Of a DNA stretch of 64,000 nucleotides, positions 22,816 through 57,647 are shown in pieces. The number at the start of each line of letters is the position of its first letter. Position 1 is the first letter of the stretch. The DNA lies in the NCBI GenBank assembly GCA_009103225.1, contig RHPI01001037.1:372001-436000 (forward strand), written 5' to 3'. The translations under genes and the position numbers were made by a program. This DNA is from Chlorokybus atmophyticus. Taxonomy: Eukaryota; Plantae; Mesostigma and Chlorokybus algae. The notes beneath the pieces are model-generated. The model searched no databases, was not told where the DNA came from, and saw nothing but the letters and a program-made list of their open reading frames with translations.

Positions 22816-24450
22816 ATGGCGCTGTCGTCGGGACAGAAGCCACTGTACGCCGTCGTGGGTGCCGGCGGCAAGACTGGCTCTCTCTGCGTGCAGGAGGCGC
22901 TCAGGCATGGTATGGACACTGGCAGGTCACTGCATGGAATAGTAACGTACTTGTCTTTACTGTGTGTCTTTGTGCTCATATACCTGAGGCTTTTGTCGTC
23001 CTCAAGCAGCAATCACCTTCCGCTTGTAGGGTACAGGGCAAGGGCGGTGGTGAGGGACCCGAGCAAGTATGCTGGCAAGTTCGAGCCGGATGCTGAGGTA
23101 AACCCGCTAAGTTGCAACGCACAAAGGCTAACCAGAACTCTAGTTCCCATTTCTGGACAGTATAATCCCCATTATGGAACTTCACCTATGTGTGGTTGGT
23201 GATGCATGTGCATGCAGGTTGTTGCTGGGGACGTCAAGTCGCCCGCCACACTCAGCCAAGCGCTGGACGGCGCCAAGGGCGTCATCTTTGCTGCTTCCGC
23301 CGCCTCATACTTTGACGCCTACAACGTGGACTACAAGTATGCCCCTCCCCCCCNNNNNNNNNNNNNNNNNNNNNNNNNNNNNNNNNNNNNNNNNNNNNNN
23401 NNNNNNNNNNNNNNNNNNNNNNNNNNNNNNNNNNNNNNNNNNNNNNNNNNNNNNNNNNNNNNNNNNNNNNNNNNNNNNNNNNNNNNNNNNNNNNNNNNNN
23501 NNNNNNNNNNNNNNNNNNNNNNNNNNNNNNNNNNNNNNNNNNNNNNNNNNNNNNNNNNNNNNNNNNNNNNNNNNNNNNNNNNNNNNNNNNNNNNNNNNNN
23601 NNNNNNNNNNNNNNNNNNNNNNNNNNNNNNNNNNNNNNNNNNNNNNNNNNNNNNNNNNNNNNNNNNNNNNNNNNNNNNNNNNNNNNNNNNNNNNNNNNNN
23701 NNNNNNNNCCCCCCCGCGCCGCGCATGTCACATGTGTGCGAGTTTGCCTGCTGAGTGTGTTGTGTCTCTATCAGGGGTTTAGAGGCCGTGGCGAATGCGG
23801 CAAAGGAGCGTGGGTTGGATCGTGTGGTGGTGGTGTCCTCCATGCTCGTGACGCCGAAGAACAGGTGGAACCCGATACGCCTTATTCTTAACAACGTCAA
23901 GTGGGGCCTCATGGACAACAAGTTCAGAGGTGCGTGCAAGCGTCTGAGAGCATGCTTAGCATGCAGTCATGCATGCACGTGCACACACATAATAGCCAAA
24001 GTATGTGTACGTGCATGGGCGCCCGCCCGCATAAATGCGTGCACACGCACACACACCTCTGTAACTTTGCATACAGGTGAAGAGGCATTGCGCAAGAGCG
24101 GCGTTCCATACACCATTGTCCGTCCCGGCGGCCTGTCTGATGATCCTCCAAAGGGCCTCGGAGCCGTGAAGGTAATCACTAGAAGACACCATAGCAACTC
24201 TCTTATACACACTCCAGGCCGCATCCCTGAAAATCTACTCCGCTCCACGCAGGTGCTACAGGGCGATACCGGCAGTGGTGGTGGGCGGATCTCCCGCGCG
24301 GATGTCGCAAAGGTGTGTGTGGAGGCGCTGGCGGAGCCCACCGCCAAGAACATCACGCTCGAAATCATGGGCAAGCCAGGTGTTCAGGAAGTCTCTGCTG
24401 CTGACATGGTAACGCCCAGTGCTTTCTTTAGCACGCTGGCGACGGATTGA
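22816..24450 (+). CDS. NAD(P)-binding Rossmann-fold protein (atypical SDR, NAD(P)H-binding/NmrA/TIC62-like), 6 exons
   Basis: YAVVGAGGKTG (GxxGxxG), AVVRDP, VVAGDV, VIFAAS, VVVVSS, EEALRKSGVPYTIVRPGGL and ISRADVA, with consistent GT/AG junctions. One intron contains an N gap. Confidence 0.9.
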
Positions 24451-46013: not shown

Positions 46014-48594
46014 ATGCGTGACGCGTTACTCCTGGGCGGTGGTGTTGTTGGCGGAATACCCAGCGGCGACGGTGACGGCGTTGGCAATGGCGTTAGCGTA
46101 GCAAGCAGGCAGGGGGAGCCTGAGCCGCAGCAAGCTGGCGTGATGCGGGCGGCGGCGGCGGGAGGCGTGTGGGGCCCGCACGAGAGGGCGGTGCTGCTGG
46201 AGAGGATAGCCGTGCCGACGTCGTCGCCAGGGGGAGGCGGCTCGCCTGAGTTCGCAGACCCGGAGTCAGGCGCAGCATCCGCCTCCTCGTCCGCCTCCAC
46301 CTTTGCCGCCGCCGTCACAGCTTCGGTGAAAACCCACACTTCAGTACAATAAATCACCCCATTGCACTTGGTTGCGTGCTGCTGCCTCTCCCATTTTCCC
46401 ACATAAGCTCGCCTTGCAATTGGTATTCACGCACTAGCTGTGATGCTACTACATTGCTATACCGCAGCAGTTCACAACACTTGCGCGTCATGCGTAAGCA
46501 TGCAGTCTTGCTCCGTCCTCCATACACATGTGCAACGAGCTCCTGTGTGGGCAACACGCAGGCGGTGTTGTTCATAACAGGAATCAGCTGTGAAGTGTGG
46601 TGCTACATGTAACCAAACAATGCATGCCAGCAAAACCTCCCCTTCCCCAATAGGAACGCCTCCACTGTTATGCCTATGACATTTCAACTTGCCCCTGCAA
46701 GAAACGCTAGCTTTTGATCAGCTGTCGACTTGCAATGCAGCTGAAACAAGCATTTTCCCCCTCTAGTTGCAAGAGTCCTGCGTTCCAGTTTGCCTTCATC
46801 TCACCGCGGTTGTGTTGTTGCGTGGAAAGTCTTGACCCGCACACACCCACACCGGGAAGAGTACAGCAGCAGAATTGGTTCACTAGGCACGCTGACTGTT
46901 GGCTGGTGTCCACTTTGTGTTAACAGAAGTTGGCGTCGGAGGCGGCGCGTGCGTGGAGGGTGTCGCGCGTGGCGTGTGCCGCGGCGTGCTGCGCGGCGGG
47001 CTTGTACTGCGCCAGCCTCTTCATCCCGGGCCTGCGCCTGGACTACGACAGCCGCGGCGCCGACCAACGGACGCCACGCCCCCTCGAGGACACGGAGCTA
47101 CGCCTCAAGCTCGCTCTCCACTGCGTCATACTCGCCGCCGCCGCCACCGTCCAGTGGGCTCTCAGGCTCGAACACAAAGCCCGCCGCAGGCAGGCATGCA
47201 ATGGCACACATGTGTATTTGCATGTGCACTTGCATGTACGTACATGTCTGCGTGTGAGTGTGAGTGCAAGTGTCTCAAGTGAGCGTGTGCAGGTACGTGT
47301 GTATGCATACGTGCATGTGTGTGCATGTGCCTGTGTGTGTGTGCGTGTGCAAGGTGGGTCCTGCTATGCAGTTGCGTATGTGTCCATTGGGTGGGTGACA
47401 GAGTGATGTATGTGACAGGGTTTTCTGAAGCTGTACCAGCGGTTGCGAGTTCACCGACGCGTGCCGCTGCCATTTGCATCGACGGCGCACTGCCTCGTGC
47501 TCCTGCTCGCAACCTGGCCTCAGTTTTCCTTGTCTTTGGGACCCTACAATGCTTTGCGCATCATTGTTGTTACCGAGGTGTGTGCAAGCGAGATTGTTTC
47601 CCACGCAACGCTCACAGCAACTCACAAACATGCTGCATGTGACACGCGCAAGCAGGTGGTGGCCCTGGCTTTGCTTCTCATCCACCACAGTAAGGTGCTG
47701 AAGGACCACAGCGCTGGCAATGCCGCCCCAGACGTCGACGAGTCTTTGCGGGTATGTTGGTTCACAAACACGCTCTCACACACACACGCGCATGCGCACG
47801 CGCACGCGCAGGCATACCTTATATCACAATGGCGTCCATCTTAACACAAGAGTTGCAGGCGCCGTTGCTGATAGAAGCGTCGGGGCAGCGGCATGGCGTG
47901 GGAGATGGCGTGGGCGGCGGGATGGGTGGCGCGGGCGGGGTGGGCGTGGGCGAGGTGGGGGACGTGTGCGAGCGGCAGGCGGAGCTGATATCGTTCTTGC
48001 ACGACGGGCTTCGGGCGCTGTCGAAGGAGCTGTTGCATTTGCAGGCGCGGCTGCGCAGGGCCGAGGGGGATGGCGGGGGCATCGGGGTGAAGCATCGAGG
48101 AGGAGGAGGGGGAGGACGGGACGTGGAGCACCTCCTCGGCGTGCGCGAGGCCGAGCTGCGTGCCCTCGCAGCTGAGCGCGAGCATCTACTTGCTGACATC
48201 CGCGGCGCTAAACACCTCCAGGCCTCGCGTGACGCTGAAATTGAGTACCTCAAAGTTGTCAACCAGCAGGTGCGTGCGTGCGCGTGTCATATCTGCGGCT
48301 CTTTGAGGCTTGGCTAGCATTGGGCATGTGGATGTTGACTTGAAGTGAATGCAGCACATGGATGAGAACTCGCGGCTACGAGCCATGCTCGAGGAGTGGA
48401 GCACGCGCACGGCCAAGGTGTGTGCTGTGTTCATGTGTAAAAGACAGTTTGTTCGGTGTTGGCATGGTTGGTCAGTGACATGGTTGTCTTATCCGCAGCT
48501 TGAGGCTCTGCTGCAGCGACCATCTCGGACTAGTGGCAGCAGCGGGGCTAATGCAAGTAGTGTTGATAGCAGACCGCCCAGGACACCCTCGTAG
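46014..48594 (+). CDS. TMEM192/plant FIP1-like membrane protein with C-terminal coiled coil
   Basis: Hydrophobic N-terminal exons. The C-terminus QAELISFLHDGLRALSKELLHLQ...VEHLLGVREAELRALAAE...SRDAEIEYLKVVNQQ|HMDENSRLRAMLEEWSTRTAK|LE parallels the plant FIP1/TMEM192 coiled coil as recalled. Confidence 0.7.
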
Positions 48595-49024: not shown

Positions 49025-49061
<37 letters not shown>

Positions 49062-49073
49062 CCCAAAACATAT

Positions 49074-49131
<58 letters not shown>

Positions 49132-49144: not shown

Positions 49145-49505
49145 AGCCTTTATTTTTATCTACACAGCGCGGCGGCGATTTAACATTCACAAGTGCCGCG
49201 CCAGCACCAGCCCGTCAAAGTAGGGTAGTTCAGGCGGTTCCTCCCAACCCAAGTTGACGGTAATCTCGGAAAGTGAGGGCAAACTCAACCAGCTGGCATT
49301 TGAGATTAACCATAAATAGTGTGCACAGCTGTATCAGCAGCAAGTGAACAACTTCCATTATTCATAACTTCATCATTATTCATGAACCACTAACACGCAC
49401 CAAGCACTGCACAGCAGTAACTGCGGCAAGCTGCTCATCCATAAGTAAATTACTCTGTACACACCGCATCATACTGCTACACTACCTAACCCTGCAACAA
49501 CACGA

Positions 49506-52500
49506 CTACACTACTTTATCTTGTTTGGCCGCCGCTGGTCGCCGTCTGCGGCGCCGCTTGCCCCCGTGCTTCTTGCCAGGCTTTGGTGGTAATGTGCTGT
49601 CGATCCGCCTTGCGCGTGCAAATAGTGCTTCAGCTGTGGGCTTGTCGCCATGGGAGTTCTCCAGCACACCCCACTCGGTCAATATGGCTGCATTCTCTGG
49701 CTGCAGATGCACAGCCTTCTGCAGCAAGCGCCGGGCGGCCGACAAGTCTCCAGCCTTGCGCTCAAGGTGTGCCGCTGCCTGTAGGCAATGCACACTCTCG
49801 GGATCAGCTGCCAGTCCCTGCGAAAACAGCTCCCGCGCTTGCACATAGTTGCCTGTGTCTGCCTCGAGCCGACCCCACGCTTGCCATGATGGCGCATTGG
49901 CGGGGTCAATGGTGACGCTGCGCTTGAACAACTCCCTCGCAGCCTCAGCGTTGCCAACAGCGGCTTCAGCAACCGCCCAAGCATGCAGTATATAACAATT
50001 GTTTGGTTTGGCGTCCAGCCCTTGCTGAAACAGCTGGCGCGCTCGTGCAATGTCACCACAGCGAGCTTCCATGCGGCCCCAAGATTGCCACACACGAGCA
50101 TCTGTAGGTGCAACCCTAGCACAGCGCCGGAACAGCTCCCTTGCGCGGTCCAGGTCACCTTCTGAAGCCTCCAGGTCTGCCCAAGCGTGTAACACCACAA
50201 CATTACTGGGCTCCAATGCAGATGCGCGCTGCAGGAGTTCCCGCGGGGACACGTTTGGGCTCTTGCATCTGCGCGCTGTAGCAGCCCAAGCACTCAGCAC
50301 AGTTACAACCTCGTGCGGATTCGAGCGCACACCCGCCACCCCGCGAAAGGCAATGGCTGCATTCAGTGCCTCCTCCATCAGGCGGGCCGCAGTGCTGTGG
50401 TTTCCCAGGTGCGACTCCATGATTGCCCAAGACTTAGTGGCAGCGGAGCAGCCTCCAAGATCATTGCTGGCGCGAAATGCTCTGGTCGCCTTGTTGAAAA
50501 GAGCTCGAGCCTTGACGAAGTCATTGGAGCGGCGCTCGAGTGTTGCCCATTGTGTCAAGGCCTGCCCGTCGAGTGGAAACAGCTGCACGCAGTGATCCAG
50601 TGTGTCTCTTGCCCTGTCAACTTGGCCCGCCAAGTAAAGTATCCTGGCTTTCTGGCGGAGTTCAGTCGCGTCAGGTGCACTGGTGCTGGTGCCCTGATTG
50701 GTAGCATCATCATCCTCAATTCGTGAATCCTCCTCCTCATCAACACCTATGTACACTGGGGAGGCAGCAAGGTCCACTTCAATGGGGCGTTCAGCAACAT
50801 CTGGAGACTGCCAAATCTCTTCCAGCTGCGCAAAGTCGTCTGAAGCAACTTCTGCAACTGACGTGACTTGTGCGGCAGATTCGGCATGCACAGTTTGGTC
50901 AAGACCCTGCATGCGGCGCCCTAGCCGCTGGCGATAAGTGCGGTCGACATCAGGAAGCTTTCGCAGAACCCCAACCTGCATGACGTCCCAGAATTAACTT
51001 GAGACAAGTGGCCTGGGTTCTACCGATGCTACTCCAGGCCTCTGACTGCAAATCGCTTGATATGTTACCTGCCGGCGGAAGTTGTAAAACTCCTCCCAAT
51101 TCACCGTGCCATCACTGTTTGCATCAACCTGGTCAAAGCGAGAATAACCATGAGCATGCTGCAGGCTGCAGCTAGCCAGCATGTCAACTTGGAAAAGACA
51201 ACAACAAGACCAGGCAAGCCATAAAGATCGGAGACTTTCCATTGAAAAACAAACAGACACAAAGCATAACCATCTCAGTCCATCTCAGTCGAGGATATGA
51301 TGTGATACAATATGACATGAATTTTCTGTCACACTTTCACAACACAAACCCCTACCAGCTGCATCAGCTGTGCAGCATCCGCGGACTGGTCATCAGAGCT
51401 GCCGCCAGAGCTAAGCTCTGCCATCACCTCCCTGAACTCGCCGAGGGAAATGACCCCATCCCCATTCTTGTCGAACAACCGGAACATCTGATCCGCAAGA
51501 TGCTCCTCCAACCCGCGCGCTGAGTCAGTCTGCTAACAGCACAGAGTGTCAGGAACCAGGAAGCGCAACAATGCCACACAAGCACAGTCCACAAGCAGAC
51601 AAGACCTGTGCCAAGCTCCTGCTCCTCGACGCAGCAACTTCTGCAGCAAACTCTGACAGAACCCTCAGTCGCTGTGCCTGTTACAAGCAACTAGCATCAG
51701 TACAGTGTGCAACCTCAGTGCAACACAACAATCAGGGCTTCTTCAGACACTCAACGCCAATACCAAACACAAACCTGTTCAGGGTCCAGCATAGCCTTGT
51801 AGGCAGAATGGGCAGCTGCCCCACCTTCTGCCAGGGAGTCCATAGCTTCTGTGCGCACTTGCAGCTCCATCAGTGTCTCGTCCACAGTTATAGTGGAATG
51901 CAAGCTCTGGTATCCATTGCGCTTTGGTCTAGCAATGTAATCTTTCGACCGCGCTGGCTCAGGAGGCCATGTGGCATGGGCGATATCCTGTACCCTATAA
52001 CAGGCCTCGATACCCGCTGCCTCATGGTCTGTGTTTGTTGAGGCACATGGCTTGAGTGTCACGCGAATACCCAGCCTATCATACACCTCATCTGGCTGTT
52101 TGCCTCTGTGAGACATACCACTTGAGTCATTGCATCAACATGACAAGTTATGAGATACAGCTCTCGTCCACAAACATACCTGAGCAGCTTCTTCATTGTG
52201 CTCAGCAAGCTTTTGCAGCGGGCACGCACTGAAAACGACTCAACCTGCTGAATTGTGTAAGTATAGTGTAGTATATACTGCACCAGTTGAAAGCATTCAC
52301 TGAAAATAACTCAGCAAACCCAACATACCAGCTCGCCTAGTACAGGATCTTGCGCAATCAATGTCTCCAGCTGCTGCCTGGTATCCTCGAGCAAGAGTCT
52401 ATGATGTGAAGCATCCGCATCATACCACTCCTTCAGGGAAGCATAGGACTCGGGAAACAGCACCTTCAAAGCTGCATCCTCCAGATCTGGGATGAACTCC

Positions 52501-54270
52501 AAGGTTCCTAGTGCATGCGCTAGCGGTGCATACACTTGTATGGTTTCCAAGGCTGCGATCTGCTGCCTGTACAATGGCAGCAAATGCACATGCCGCATGG
52601 TATCCACCCTAGCTGCGAGCTCCACCCACACAGCGCGAACTGCAATGCAACCCTATATGAGGACAAAGCATACAATACGGCATAACCTGCTTTATTTGGC
52701 ATGACATCCGCGAACAAGTGTATGCGTACTGTCATGGAATGCAAGACAATAGTCTCGCAATGCTTGAGCGGCGTCATCATCATAGCTGTCCGCCCTTCTT
52801 GGAACATCTTTGACACGCAAGCTGTGACACATGAAGTGAGCAACCACACAAACACAACTACCTAATCTATGAACAACACGGCCTGCTTGTGTCAAGCAGT
52901 GTCACCTTTTGTATGGCAAGCACTGTACCTGTCATGCAAGAGTGCAGCAATATCAACCCCAACTCGCTGCTCCACAAGTGGCAGTGTAACAAGGCCGGTC
53001 TTTGCAGCCTCTAGCAGAACGCCTGTGGCTATGACAACCATGTCCATCTACGCACAAGACACTTGAAGTTGCTGGCCATAGTAGCACAGTGTCATGCACC
53101 ATGCCTCTTCGGCAGCGATGCAGGTGCATTTCCGTAAAACAGTGACTTCCAGGTTAGCCATACCTGCATATCAGCTAAGATGCCAGCAATTGCTAACGCT
53201 CGTGCAATGCGAGGTCGACCTCCTTCCAATGGTGGAGTTCCCTGCAATGTGTTGTAAGTTATCAAATTGCATACCACGCCAGTTGGTGTGAGTGAGAATG
53301 GCAACGAACCTGCAAAGCGGCAACCGCCAACTTGAGTGCCTCCAACAATGTCTGCACGCACAGGATATCAGTGTGAAACGTGAGAATAACTCACAAACCC
53401 TCAAGCACACTGATTGAGATTAACACAACTTCACAGCGGCTGCGACAAACCAGTAATTTCCATTCACAGAACCAAGCGACCACCAAGTGCTCACAGGAAA
53501 GGGTGCATAATATCAACATGTACTAGTGCTTCGAGGACAATTTGTTGACATGCAAGGATGCAAGTTAACAAGAGCACTGATAGATGGCCATTGTCACAGT
53601 AGTTACGGATAGTTATGCACCTGTGCAGCTGGACCATAGTGGTGCTCTGGAGACAATCGGGACATAAGCTCATCCCATGCTCCGACAAGCTCCATGACGC
53701 GCTGCCCGCCTGGCGCCAAGCCATCCTGCCCACCAGCTTGAACGAGTGCCGATCCGCCCTCATCTGCAGTCCACCCGAAATCCAAACCTGACGACGACCC
53801 CAAACTCGATGACCGATTGGAGTCTATCCTTGTCGCAACAGCGTACACGGGAACAGCCCTAGCGACGGCCTGCCACAGTTGCCAATAGTTGTCAATGTCA
53901 AGATAACCGTCGCACGTTAGTCAAGACCAGCATATGATGACCCCGACCACACTAGCTGCCAATTGCCATGCCCTGGTATACATTAAGCACACAACATCTC
54001 TGCTTGATAGTGTGGTAAGAGCTCCCGCAAGCTTCTTGACAAGCAGTACACAAGGGCCGTCATCATGCAGAAGGCAAACCCTATATGCCCAATTGTTGGG
54101 CAACCCGCAAGGGAAGCAATTGAACAAGAGCTCACCTGCCGGACCTTTCCCCTACGAGCACTCTGCAGCTGCTGCTGTTGCGCCTGGCGTGGCAAGCAAG
54201 CAGTGTCCACCAGCGCGGTCCTCCACGCGGCGGTCACCCCAGACGTCGACGCCACCGCGCCCGCCACCAT
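49506..54270 (-). CDS. CRSH: Ca2+-activated RelA/SpoT homologue (CRSH: transit peptide, degenerate HD, synthetase, 2 EF-hands) with an in-frame C-terminal HAT/TPR repeat array
   Basis: ETIQVYAPLAHALG, RCKSLLSTMKKLLR, DRLGIRV, KDYIARPKRNGYQSLH, ELQVRT, then EF-hands DKNGDGVISLGE and DANSDGTVNWEE. A 93-nt phase-0 GT-AG intron (51068..50976) leads into ORF 49506..50981, which has about 10 W..WG.LE...G....AR.LF repeats. The CRSH identity is firm; the fusion depends on this splice. Confidence 0.85.
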
Positions 54271-55342
54271 GTTACGAACTCCAGTGCACCAATACCCGCA
54301 TCCACAAAACAGAGCGCCACGGCAACCCCCAGATCCAACGCCGTAACCTACTCCCACACCACGACTACCACAGCAACGCCTGCGACGACATTTTGCCGCC
54401 GTAGCTAACTCTTAACCCAACTCGTTCATCACAAACTTGGCTGTACTTGATATCCATTGATTTTTTCTACATAAAGCCGGCAGACATGCAGATATCTAGG
54501 CTTCTTGGTTGAAGCCCGCTTAACCGCGTCGCATCAATAGATGCACACTTCTATTGGCTCCCAGCACAGATCTTCCGTGAAGCGTGCACCAGGCGTTTGC
54601 AGCGCGGGTGTGCGGAGGGAACCGACGACCAAACCACCTGTGTGCAAGACCCGCTGCAGTCAAGGTGTTTCAGTAGTGCTGCCAGCAGCAATGTGGCTGC
54701 TGCAAGACCGTTAGATGTGGGAGCAAAAATCCAATGGCCAAGCTGCTTGGATCTCCGCGGCCCATCGCTGTCGTGGCACTCGGGACGTGCTACCATTGAT
54801 ATCACTCAGCCGCGCCTGAGATTCAGATTCTGCCCCGCCGTTTCAGTAAGCTGCCCGCGCCCGCCCGATCCAGATTGCAGCAGCAGGATCCCCTCGAACC
54901 CGTTCGTATGTCAATCACAGCCTCTGGGCCTGTTCAGGCAACCGGTCATTGACACCTCCCGAGTGGGTCACGACAACAAGATGAGTTGGCGGAGCCGGTT
55001 GGGCGTCACGCCAGCTTGTGGCGGGCCGGTGGCGCCACTGGCGGCTCTGCTAAAAGTTAACTTGACATGAGCAGCGTGATGTCCGGTGTCAATGGCCGCA
55101 TCCGCGTGCGCTCACACAGAATGTTGTGCTCAGTGTCGCGCAGTGCAGATATCCACTGGCGTGCGCACTGGGGACGCTTGTCATGTCGCCCGACAGGCCA
55201 GTGGTGTAGTGAGCGGCGACGCCGGCGGAGCCATCCGTGCAAGGCTGGTGGATGACATGCTGCGGGCGGCGTTGCAGATGAGCTAGGGTTTGCCCTTCAA
55301 TAGGCCTAGAGGTCCGCGTCATTCCATTGCTGGTTTTCAAGC

Positions 55343-57647
55343 ATGGGGGCGACGACGCAGCCGCTGGCGGCGGCCAGGAGCTTCATGCTGTCGTTGGGGT
55401 TGGTGGTGTGCCTGACCTCGGCGCTGTCGGGCTGCACAGCGGCGGAGTCGACAAACAGCGAGTCGCCGGAGGCGGCGGCATCATGGGGTATGCCCCCGGA
55501 CGCATTCAACGCGAGCCTGCACAGGGCGCTGACGGAGGAGGACGCGTGGACGGAGCTCAAGGCGATGGCGCAGCGGCGGGCGTCTGCGCCGAAGGACGGC
55601 AATCTACTGGTGGTCGCCTTCACAGACTTTTCACTTTCGGACGCAGTGAACACCATCAACTGGGTTCAGGCCGTAGAGGCTGTCAATGTCACCAACTGGC
55701 TGGTCCTCTCCTTTGACCGCGCCGCCACTGATGGCCTTGCCGCCCGCAATGTCCCTGTCGCCAAAATCTCAGGCCTTCTTCGCAAGTACGTATGATGCCT
55801 TCGTACATGATCATGCCTTGGAAACAGATTGCGCACTGCATGCTTCGGCATTTGACATGCAGTGTACAATTTGCGTCGAAATGTCATCTGGTCCAGCATG
55901 GATGTGCGCGTAAGGCGGTGCCAGACATGGCCATAGCTGGCTTATGGTCACATTCGATTAAGCATGCATGACATGTACCTACATATAAATATGGTTTATA
56001 TATGATTCAACAGCTTCCGCTGAACCACTCCCCGCTGTCAATAGTCTCAGCGTTGTTGTATGCGACCTTTAGTTGCAAACCGCCTGTGAACTCGTGCGTG
56101 CATGACATGTACCTGTGCATAAGTACGCTTTGACAGCTTGAACTACTTCTTGTTGTTGATAGTCTCAGCATTGTTGTATGCAATTTTCAGTTGCAAACCT
56201 CCTGTGAATTGTTCGGCTGTGGAGCGCTATGCGGAGAAGATGCACGTGCGGTTCAAGGTAATTTACAACCTGCTGGTTTGGGGTTATCGAGTGGTGGTGT
56301 CGGATACGGGAGCGGTGTGGCGAAGCCCGAGGACGCTGGAGTACCTTACTGAACACGGCACACCAGTAGACATTGCCGGGCAGAGAGACCTTACGGAGCC
56401 CGCGGATGTCACAGCCCTTGACATGGGCCTCATTTTCTTCAACACAACACCGGCCGCCAAGCGCCTCACCCTCGCCGCCATGGATAATGCTCCCGCCGCC
56501 TCCGCTGCCGCTTGTGACAGGGATATCCATTGCCTGGAGCAGGCTGCATTCAAGGCCACACTGCAGAATGTCCACATTGACTGGGCGGTATGCACATGTC
56601 TGGTTTGCAGTTCATTGTGCATGTGCGATGTAGTTAGTTTGCTCGTTGGGTTTGTGATCATGCGTGGCGAGCAGGTATATGAGGATCATAGGCAGCTGCA
56701 TGTGTTGAGCTATGACACTGTGCTGGGCGATGCCGTAATTCCTACAAGTATACCCGAGCAGCAGATTGCGCTTCGTGTGGCCCTTTTGCCAAATTATCGC
56801 ATGCGGGATGTCTCACGGTCAGTACCAATCATGTTGCTCGGTTGGCAAGTGTCTTTATTCAAGAGTTAGAGTCAACTAACAATTCATCTACCATACAGGT
56901 CCACATTTGCAGCAGCGTCTGCAGAGATTGCAAGTCTTCCTTCGCCATCAACAGACCTAGAAGAGTGCGCCGGAACAGCGCGGAGTTTTGAAGATCTGAT
57001 GGCGTGCATTTACCCAGGCTATGACCCCGAGCGTGATGCGCCTCCCGGGGCTCGTACGGGCATCCACCGCTGCACCGCTGCTGTTGTCCACTGCACTGGA
57101 AGGGTCAGTTTCGTGCTGTTGCATAGAGGGAGTACTCATGCATCATCACTTGTGCTGCACAAGAGATCTCAGTTAATAGATAATGCTAGTGGTTCAAGTG
57201 CATAGTCGTTTAGCTCATGTTAACATGGCTGACAGTTCGTTCACCTCCATCCTGACTCAACCGCTAAGTGTTGGTGGATGCAGAGTTTGACAGTAGTTCT
57301 TACAACTCTTGATCTTGCAGGTGAGGGAGAAGTTCATGTGTCTGAGGTCGAACTACGCATGGGTGCTGAAGTCGGATTCGGGCCACCCGGTGGTGCCGCC
57401 ACCAGGACCGAACGGTGGCTACATCGACGAGGAGGGCTTCTCGGCGTGGCTTCACCAGTCGTGGAGCACCTTTGACTGGCGGCTACCAGATGACTACTTT
57501 GAATCCACCAGCCGCCCGCGCCTCCGCACCCCACTCGACACCCTGCTGGACCGTTTCCTGCCCAAGGGTCATGCACCCGCACCTGGCCCATCCGGCACGG
57601 CTATCAGCCCTACTGCGAGCAGCAGCAATACAACATCAACGCAGTGA
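55343..57647 (+). CDS. Nucleotide-diphospho-sugar transferase (GT77-like) type II membrane protein
   Basis: N-terminal signal anchor. VNVTNWLVLSFDRAATDGL, VRFKVIYNLLVWGYRVVVSDTGAVWRSP, LDMGLIFF, EQAAFK and VVHCTGR|VREKFMCLR follow the GT77 motif order. Confidence 0.7.

Follow-up and report, generated by a model that had tools for sequence, protein, structure and literature searches.

Does the gene for a (p)ppGpp synthetase of the CRSH type in Chlorokybus atmophyticus run on into an array of HAT repeats, or do two separate genes lie there end to end? The question is raised by a locus on contig RHPI01001037.1, in a window (the whole stretch of DNA analysed, 64,000 nucleotides) that covers positions 372,001-436,000 of the contig. 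In rice and Arabidopsis, CRSH is a Ca2+-activated plastid (p)ppGpp synthetase, and a preliminary description of the window, made from its letters alone, had proposed such an enzyme fused to about ten HAT repeats of the kind found in HCF107 and Mbb1. Our analyses indicate that the locus is very probably a single RSH4/CRSH gene of Chlorokybus, in which an RSH4/CRSH core is followed by a HAT array. That one long protein joins this core to the HAT solenoid is close to certain. The gene lies on the minus strand, and window coordinates are used throughout.

The evidence for a single gene comes from transcripts. Public sequencing runs were screened by sampled words, and two runs, X1 (2013, study P1) and X2 (2021, study P2), matched approximately 57% of the words, the share expected from exons alone. 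Contigs of these runs were mapped to 49300-54500 and contained 12 joints, all reading CT..AC on the plus strand and hence GT..AG on the minus strand. The label "RNA?" carried by the runs is a guess; we take the contigs to stem from spliced RNA because the 12 introns are missing from them. X2 provided a single 3337-nucleotide contig running from 54347 to 49444 with every joint in it, while X1 provided two overlapping contigs, one of which connects the HAT exon with both EF-hand exons. The mapped contigs reach to 49433 on one side and to 54347 on the other, and none extends past the gene. Splicing the window at the observed joints gave the same 3337 nucleotides, with an open reading frame from the ATG at 54270 to the stop codon at 49506-49508. 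Its 1065-residue product is identical to a database protein (P0001), the EukProt/JGI model Chlat1 4343, Chrsp29S04492, of C. atmophyticus. The window has a G+C content of approximately 52%, and the introns are short. The features that bear on the junction between the two parts are as follows.

49444..54347, minus strand: transcribed unit of the RSH4/CRSH-HAT gene, 13 exons and 12 GT..AG introns, mRNA of 3337 nucleotides, spanned as a whole by one X2 contig.
51356..51529, minus strand: exon 11, EF-hand 1 with loop DKNGDGVISLGE; Pfam EF-hand_1, 2.8e-10.
51069..51128, minus strand: exon 12, EF-hand 2 with loop DANSDGTVNWEE; ends ...FYNFRRQ at a GT donor.
50976..51068, minus strand: 93-nucleotide phase-0 intron between EF-hand 2 and the last exon, GTAACA...ATGCAG; joint 50973|51067 (cut +2) in X1 and X2.
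50910..50975, minus strand: start of the last exon, the post-EF-hand helix VGVLRKLPDVDRTYRQRLGRRM; first 22 codons, from an alignment of 18 RSH4 proteins.

The two parts meet across the 93-nucleotide intron. The EF-hand exon ends with ...WEEFYNFRRQ at 51069 and is followed by the GTAACA donor; the acceptor AG lies at 50977-50976, and the codons after it, GTT GGG GTT CTG CGA, read VGVLR and open the last exon at 50975. The coding stretch of this exon (49509-50975) comprises 489 codons. The splice from 51069 to 50975 is present in contigs of both X1 and X2, so that two independent studies bear out, to the nucleotide, the junction that had been predicted from the letters. These contigs cross from one part into the other, in agreement with the proposal of one gene and one mRNA rather than two genes. 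A separate HAT gene with its own promoter was considered and is ruled out by the spliced contigs.

A second line of evidence, independent of the transcripts, is found in the first codons of the last exon. In a multiple alignment, VGVLRKLPDVDRTYRQRL from this exon start aligns with EFMHNVEDRDQQYKNML of Turnera and ELMRSLEDRDDHYTKIL of Triticum, which form the C-terminal tail of the short seed-plant CRSH. A likeness to the helix after the EF-hands of land-plant CRSH had been suggested, and the alignment identifies it as homology with the seed-plant tail. The HAT exon belongs to the CRSH gene, since it opens with bona fide CRSH tail sequence. Upstream of the junction, the EF-hands are recognized both as an EF-hand_7 pair at residues 512-573 (3.9e-12) and by Pfam on the open pieces (within 51329-51511 and 50994-51260), and both loops are canonical. 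Pfam searches of the 1065-residue protein gave no match to TGS, helical, RIS/ZFD, ACT or RRM domains of the bacterial type. All other domains and their coordinates on the minus strand, checked with Pfam and by reading the exon borders, were likewise as first described.

Retention of the 93-nucleotide intron had been suggested as a source of a short second isoform. The reading frame given for it was correct, adding 25 codons and ending in ...RPLVSS* at 50994, but no short isoform is found among the contigs: none of those from X1 and X2 retains 50976-51068, and none starts within the last exon. Because rare variants are lost from contigs, the absence of a minor intron-retaining isoform is not established.

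The catalytic half of the protein is made up of three regions.

54136..54270, minus strand: coding part of exon 1 from the start ATG at 54270; Ala/Arg/Val/Gln-rich N-terminus, transit-peptide-like.
52329..53351, minus strand: exons 3-7, degenerate (p)ppGpp hydrolase HD_4 domain; residues 133-284, Pfam HD_4 1.3e-22.
51775..52244, minus strand: exons 8-9, RelA_SpoT synthetase domain; residues 351-468, Pfam RelA_SpoT 3.2e-26.

The first 60 residues contain 14 Ala, seven Arg and a single acidic residue, and composition together with knowledge of the family suggests a plastid transit peptide. In the hydrolase-like domain (Pfam HD_4 within 52311-52631 of the open pieces), the HD motif is gone: the Chlorokybus protein has LLEAAKTG where Thermus Rel (6s2t) has LLHDTLED. 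The His of the first metal-binding motif is replaced by Arg, and the HD motif is missing from every ortholog in the alignment of 18 RSH4 proteins. Judged by these residues, the hydrolase domain is inactive. The synthetase domain (RelA_SpoT within 51751-52116, 1.4e-25) retains R-x-K-S, the Asp of YDRLGIRV, GYQSLH, ELQVRT and AAHSAYK, and is probably active.

Comparison with known RSH proteins places this core with CRSH. The closest short relatives, at E approximately 1e-100, are a Diphasiastrum protein, the Zea CRSH1 cluster, and the GTP diphosphokinases with EF-hands of Turnera and Triticum (E 1e-97 to 1e-107 for the Zea, Turnera and Triticum proteins), whereas long RSHs of the TGS/ACT type appear in the same comparison only from approximately 1e-44; the closest relatives are thus CRSH and not RSH1 or RSH2/3. 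Seed-plant CRSH (Arabidopsis CRSH, rice CRSH1-3) has orthologous hydrolase-like, synthetase and EF-hand parts (41-45% identity, E approximately 1e-100) and shares the canonical EF-hand loops and the tail helix that follows them. It ends, however, approximately 50 residues past EF-hand 2 (reference position 629 in Turnera and 623 in Triticum), has neither the HAT array nor the basic tail, and keeps the active-site Gly discussed below. Bacterial long RSHs have a homologous hydrolase-synthetase N-terminal half (Thermus Rel 6s2t, E 1.6e-49) and share the logic of a catalytic half placed under a C-terminal regulatory half. Their C-terminus is of the TGS-AH-RIS-ACT type (the matches carry PF02824 and PF13291), in place of which the Chlorokybus protein has EF-hands and HAT repeats. 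In RelA and Rel, the TGS-AH-RIS-ACT region senses the ribosome and deacylated tRNA.

Downstream of the tail helix, the last exon encodes three further regions.

50652..50909, minus strand: acidic linker, net charge -14 over residues 577-684; length and sequence vary among orthologs.
49584..50651, minus strand: HAT/TPR solenoid of ten helical hairpins, residues approximately 679-1037, net +5; profile envelope 685-1040.
49506..49583, minus strand: basic C-terminal tail KPGKKHGGKRRRRRRPAAAKQDKVV plus the stop codon at 49506-49508; net +11, predicted disordered.

Pfam assigned TPR_14 (1.5e-30) to 49509-50975. Four HAT profiles also scored over their cut-offs (in brackets, in bits): HAT_PRP39_C with 46.9 bits (33), HAT_Syf1_CNRKL1_C with 45.6 (27), HAT_PRP39_N with 40.7 (27.7) and Suf with 38.9 (24.7). 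The estimate of about ten repeats held up both in a listing of motifs and in the AlphaFold model: eight carry a clear HAT signature (W..W/A..E....G....AR.LF) and two are degenerate. An AlphaFold2 model of residues 660-1065, built from a 22-sequence alignment, contained 20 helices with a mean predicted local distance difference test score (pLDDT) of 90.4 and a predicted TM-score of 0.81; pLDDT was low in the first residues. The tail is rich in Arg and Lys (KRRRRRR). Behind the HAT module, most orthologs likewise have a basic tail, in which land plants show a V(K/R)xRxFxSRK motif; the modules themselves are mostly net basic (+3 to +15, full range -1 to +15). Net basic module and tail are compatible with nucleic-acid binding. 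A Foldseek search was tried as a means of discriminating RNA-binding HAT from protein-binding TPR arrays and was uninformative in this respect, returning generic superhelices only; Tom70/71, CTR9 and Prp6 were among its PDB matches.

The relationship of the repeats to HCF107 and Mbb1 requires more care. Arabidopsis HCF107 and Chlamydomonas Mbb1 have the same repeat type as the Chlorokybus module, but they are stand-alone proteins of approximately 650 residues without an enzyme domain, whereas the Chlorokybus array is fused to RSH4. By sequence, the best named relatives of the module were Porphyridium Mbb1 (E 5.7e-75) and Cardamine HCF107 (E 1.8e-43, against 1.8e-25 for fungal Clf1). BLASTP aligned Cardamine HCF107 with 31% identity over 312 residues (E 1e-40) in several registers, which is similarity at the level of the repeat. 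The best natural PDB sequence matches were spliceosomal HAT proteins (Clf1/Crn/cwf4 and Prp6).

We then used a profile of the module, built from 18 RSH4-family proteins of which four are short forms without the array. Fused RSH4 proteins matched it end to end with 250-510 bits (375-510 for Klebsormidium and Marchantia), and so did several stand-alone proteins with 410-451 bits: Selaginella XP_024522416.1, Diphasiastrum KAJ7544724, Ceratopteris KAH7290962, Adiantum KAI5072485 and two more. HCF107 matched partially with 163 bits, and every other HAT protein partially with at most 209. In a maximum-likelihood tree, whose deep nodes are weakly supported and in which Klebsormidium, on a long branch, is wrongly placed, the stand-alone proteins are nested in a clade of land-plant and Closterium RSH4 (100/99), and the HCF107 group falls outside. 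Orthology of the array with HCF107/Mbb1 was therefore rejected on profile scores and tree. The original wording, HCF107/Mbb1-like, stands for the repeat type and for the closest named relatives but not for orthology: by profile and tree, the repeats are HAT-type, HCF107/Mbb1-like, and in an orthogroup of their own.

The fused architecture is not confined to Chlorokybus. An exhaustive HMMER search, for which the HAT exon was the query, recovered the Chlorokybus protein itself and a group of long proteins with colinear matches in their C-terminal parts. Most of these combine HD_4 and RelA_SpoT with paired EF-hands and TPR/HAT repeats; one, the fern protein P0095, lacks the RSH part. Among streptophyte algae, the fusion was found in Mesostigma viride (1259 residues), Klebsormidium nitens (1440) and Closterium (1415 and 1860; the 1415-residue model gave no RelA_SpoT match at E 1e-5). 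It was also found in Cymbomonas tetramitiformis (1046) and, among trebouxiophytes, in Nannochloris (1458, named "CRSH1"), Micractinium and Chlorella sp. A99, with an added FHA domain in the Nannochloris and Micractinium proteins. Land plants with the fusion include the liverworts Marchantia polymorpha (1412), M. paleacea (1414) and Riccia (1413), the moss Physcomitrium patens (1311) and the fern Pteridium aquilinum (1469, P0208, transcript-derived). In all, more than 15 other taxa have it, including transcript-derived proteins of Pteridium and of an MMETSP alga. This distribution shows that prasinophytes, trebouxiophytes and streptophyte algae share the conserved fusion with liverworts, a moss and a fern. 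Short forms without repeats were found in Diphasiastrum (802 residues), Turnera (621), Triticum (586 and 562) and the Zea CRSH1 cluster. The statement that land-plant CRSH ends soon after the EF-hands is thus correct for the seed plants examined and for the lycophyte Diphasiastrum but fails for Marchantia, Riccia, Physcomitrium and Pteridium, which have long forms. In Mesostigma, isoform models of Mv15166 (P0193, P0195, P0192) depart from the main model within the HAT array (at residues 919 and 1135) and stop shortly thereafter; isoforms with few or incomplete repeats are an annotation-level hint only.

Whether this architecture had already been described for algal RSH proteins had been left as a question, and the answer is yes, at catalogue level. 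The text and Table S2 of Avilan et al. 2019 record a C-terminal TPR in RSH4 of Klebsormidium, Ostreococcus, Chlorella and Marchantia (PMC6881373), with the entries Klebsormidium nitens GAQ91082.1, Ostreococcus tauri OUS43685.1, Chlorella variabilis XP_005851775.1 (with FHA) and Marchantia polymorpha Mapoly0002s0095.1. As cited there, the C-terminal TPR in RSH4 is attributed to Ito et al. 2017 (PMC6881373). The architecture is not new, because TPR-bearing RSH4 proteins are already listed; the Chlorokybus gene is a further member of a catalogued architecture, and its gene model is already public. These proteins have the same order of parts (dead hydrolase, synthetase, EF-hand pair, HAT/TPR), and the HAT modules of Klebsormidium and Marchantia are orthologous to that of Chlorokybus. 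They differ in size, at 1400-1440 residues against 1065 for the Chlorokybus protein with its shorter linker, and the trebouxiophyte members carry an extra FHA domain that the Chlorokybus protein does not have. No functional study of the RSH4 TPR/HAT repeats was found in the literature searched, in which Ito et al. 2017 was represented through Avilan et al. 2019 only.

In the lycophyte Diphasiastrum, the two halves are separate. CRSH (locus tag 05G023600) stops approximately 58 residues past the EF-hands, and the ortholog of the HAT module is another gene (09G090900), on another chromosome by the locus tags. A tblastn search found no RSH or EF-hand exon in this HAT gene or in the 10 kb upstream of it (CM055100.1, L001:10001-24034). 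The stand-alone protein has a 459-residue N-terminus without a Pfam match. Its gene model (P0079) seemingly lacks the last exon, and the Marchantia and Pteridium proteins align on to 23906-24034. Among ferns, the genome models of Ceratopteris (P0095/P0288) and Adiantum (P0131) are HAT-only, with modules nearly identical to that of Pteridium and a shared, unrelated N-terminus (35% identity over 359 residues); they could reflect a split introduced by annotation, the use of alternative first exons, or a paralog. The N-termini of the stand-alone HAT proteins showed no similarity to the RSH, EF-hand or linker parts of RSH4, save for a 61-residue stretch of P0114 directly ahead of the HAT array of P0075. 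The idea that the gene broke cleanly in two when vascular plants arose was considered and dropped, since the Pteridium transcript is fused while the Ceratopteris and Adiantum models are HAT-only. For lycophytes, the sequences support a split of the two halves.

These features allow a mechanism to be proposed. As in rice and Arabidopsis CRSH, the protein would be imported into the plastid, where Ca2+ on the EF-hands would turn on ppGpp synthesis from ATP and GDP or GTP. The anatomy of the C-terminal half suggests that the HAT solenoid and the basic tail could act as a docking module, by which the synthetase would be positioned or regulated on a partner: plastid RNA, ribonucleoprotein or protein. 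The plastid HAT proteins HCF107 and Mbb1 bind and stabilise psbH/psbB mRNAs, and we have a modest preference for RNA over protein as the ligand because these closest named relatives bind plastid mRNAs. If the module is a docking or regulatory unit, an RNA or ribonucleoprotein ligand would have slightly less than an even chance, a protein ligand would be possible at a lower probability, and a ligand of another kind would be unlikely. That the module may substitute for the ribosome-sensing region of RelA, as the preliminary description had suggested, we consider doubtful. An extended version holds that HAT module and tail would tether a Ca2+-gated synthetase to plastid ribosomes or RNAs as an independent substitute for the RelA C-terminal domain and that, after the split (in lycophytes, possibly seed plants), free HAT protein and short CRSH would form a two-component Rosetta-stone pair. 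It is similarly improbable on present evidence.

Several points weigh against the proposed mechanism. The Gly ahead of the ATP-binding Arg is replaced by Ala in the Chlorokybus protein (VRARCKS, compared with vtGRpK in Thermus; residue approximately 354, encoded within 52180-52244 on the minus strand). The top PDB matches of the predicted module in Foldseek are protein-binding TPR superhelices (OGT, SPINDLY, TTC7B, BBS4 and APC/C subunits; TM 0.35-0.59). Transfer of RNA binding from HCF107/Mbb1 is weakened because the HAT module is not their ortholog. Finally, we infer the Ca2+ dependence, plastid location and HAT ligand of the Chlorokybus protein from its relatives and its anatomy, and the label "Ca2+-activated synthetase" is applied to it by homology alone. 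The critical Gly corresponds to RelSeq G240 and SAS1 G45 (PMC6881373), and its loss is widely taken as a sign of an inactive synthetase (PMC6881373). In our alignment, Cymbomonas shares the Ala of Chlorokybus at this position, Mesostigma and Klebsormidium have Ser, and Gly is found in Closterium, bryophytes (Marchantia RSH4 included), vascular plants and trebouxiophytes. Catalysis by the Chlorokybus protein is unproven because of this change, although the diatom proteins RSH4a/b lack the Gly and still make ppGpp (PMC6881373). Plastid-located, Ca2+-activated ppGpp synthesis remains a reasonably likely activity for the Chlorokybus protein, at a confidence lowered by the Ala.

The same substitution is the starting point for a different explanation, in which the Chlorokybus protein no longer makes ppGpp and acts as a Ca2+-regulated HAT adaptor or nucleotide sensor. 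Its hydrolase domain is dead, Ser or Ala occupies the Gly position in Mesostigma, Klebsormidium and Cymbomonas as well, and the lack of synthetase activity in Arabidopsis RSH1 is generally attributed to a Gly to Ser change of this kind (PMC5633626; PMC6881373). All remaining synthetase motifs are conserved, however (the last as AAHxxYK), the diatom enzymes work without the Gly, and Ala is its most conservative replacement, so that we consider a pseudo-synthetase unlikely. A more serious competitor concerns the solenoid, which could be a protein-protein scaffold that recruits the synthetase to a thylakoid- or nucleoid-associated complex or to a chaperone, or that serves oligomerisation or autoinhibition. 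The top Foldseek matches are to protein-binding superhelices (OGT, SPY, TTC7B, BBSome, APC/C, Tom70/71, CTR9), the best PDB sequence matches are of the Clf1, Syf1 and Prp6 type, spliceosomal HAT proteins that are largely protein scaffolds, and the module forms an orthogroup separate from the RNA-binding HCF107/Mbb1. On the other side, the nearest named sequence relatives are plastid mRNA-binding HAT proteins, and both the net basic charge of the module and its conserved, strongly basic tail are what one would expect if the ligand were a nucleic acid. We regard a scaffold as a real possibility, though short of probable.

Two further explanations question the long protein itself. The locus could yield two products, through intron retention or an internal start, so that a short CRSH (...RPLVSS*), a free HAT protein or both predominate and the long fusion is minor. 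The stop after 25 extra codons in the retained-intron frame would permit this, the Mesostigma isoform models P0193 and P0195 are truncated inside the HAT array, and the lycophytes carry both parts as separate genes, which means that the two parts can work apart. Yet only the spliced form was assembled in both data sets (with the reservation about rare variants made above), and the 93-nucleotide intron is of the usual GT..AG kind, as are the remaining eleven; we judge two products to be quite improbable. The fusion could also be an artefact, either of chimeric assembly or of a gene model reading through adjacent genes, and a contig over two genes alone is indeed no proof of one transcript. In this case, the in-frame GT..AG splice occurs in two independent studies, the last exon opens with codons for the conserved tail helix of CRSH, and the same fusion recurs in the other taxa listed above. 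Splice, tail helix and taxonomic spread together effectively refute an artefact, to which we assign hardly any probability.

The reading of the locus as one RSH4/CRSH-HAT gene is therefore kept, and its value at Chlorokybus lies in confirmation: the junction exists, the published gene model is correct, and this combination of domains had already been recorded. What is new here is the splice evidence for the junction, the wider spread of the fusion with moss and fern included, and the status of the module as an orthogroup, together with the basic tail, the replacement of the Gly in lineages that diverged early, and the lycophyte split. Apart from the in vitro activation of CRSH by Ca2+, little is known about how plastid ppGpp synthetases are switched on. 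That the ancestral form of CRSH carried a conserved array of ten HAT repeats suggests a further input or a site for docking, which in seed plants would have been lost or shifted to another gene. A cluster of 71 streptophyte proteins, each of approximately 545 residues, is a lead to a possible free ortholog of the module in seed plants. Marchantia and Physcomitrium, which combine the long form with genetic tractability, are better suited than Chlorokybus to functional work; the role of the HAT module is testable there.

Three observations concern the surroundings of the coding sequence. The 77-nucleotide 5' untranslated region contains an upstream open reading frame of nine codons (MRVLVHWSS, 54272-54301, minus strand) that ends one nucleotide before the main ATG. 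Approximately 320 nucleotides past the 3' end of the transcript lies a (TA)n microsatellite of approximately 50 copies (49025-49123). Open reading frames on the opposite strand flank the gene on either side (55343-55795 and 47754-48317, both plus strand), with no Pfam match in either.

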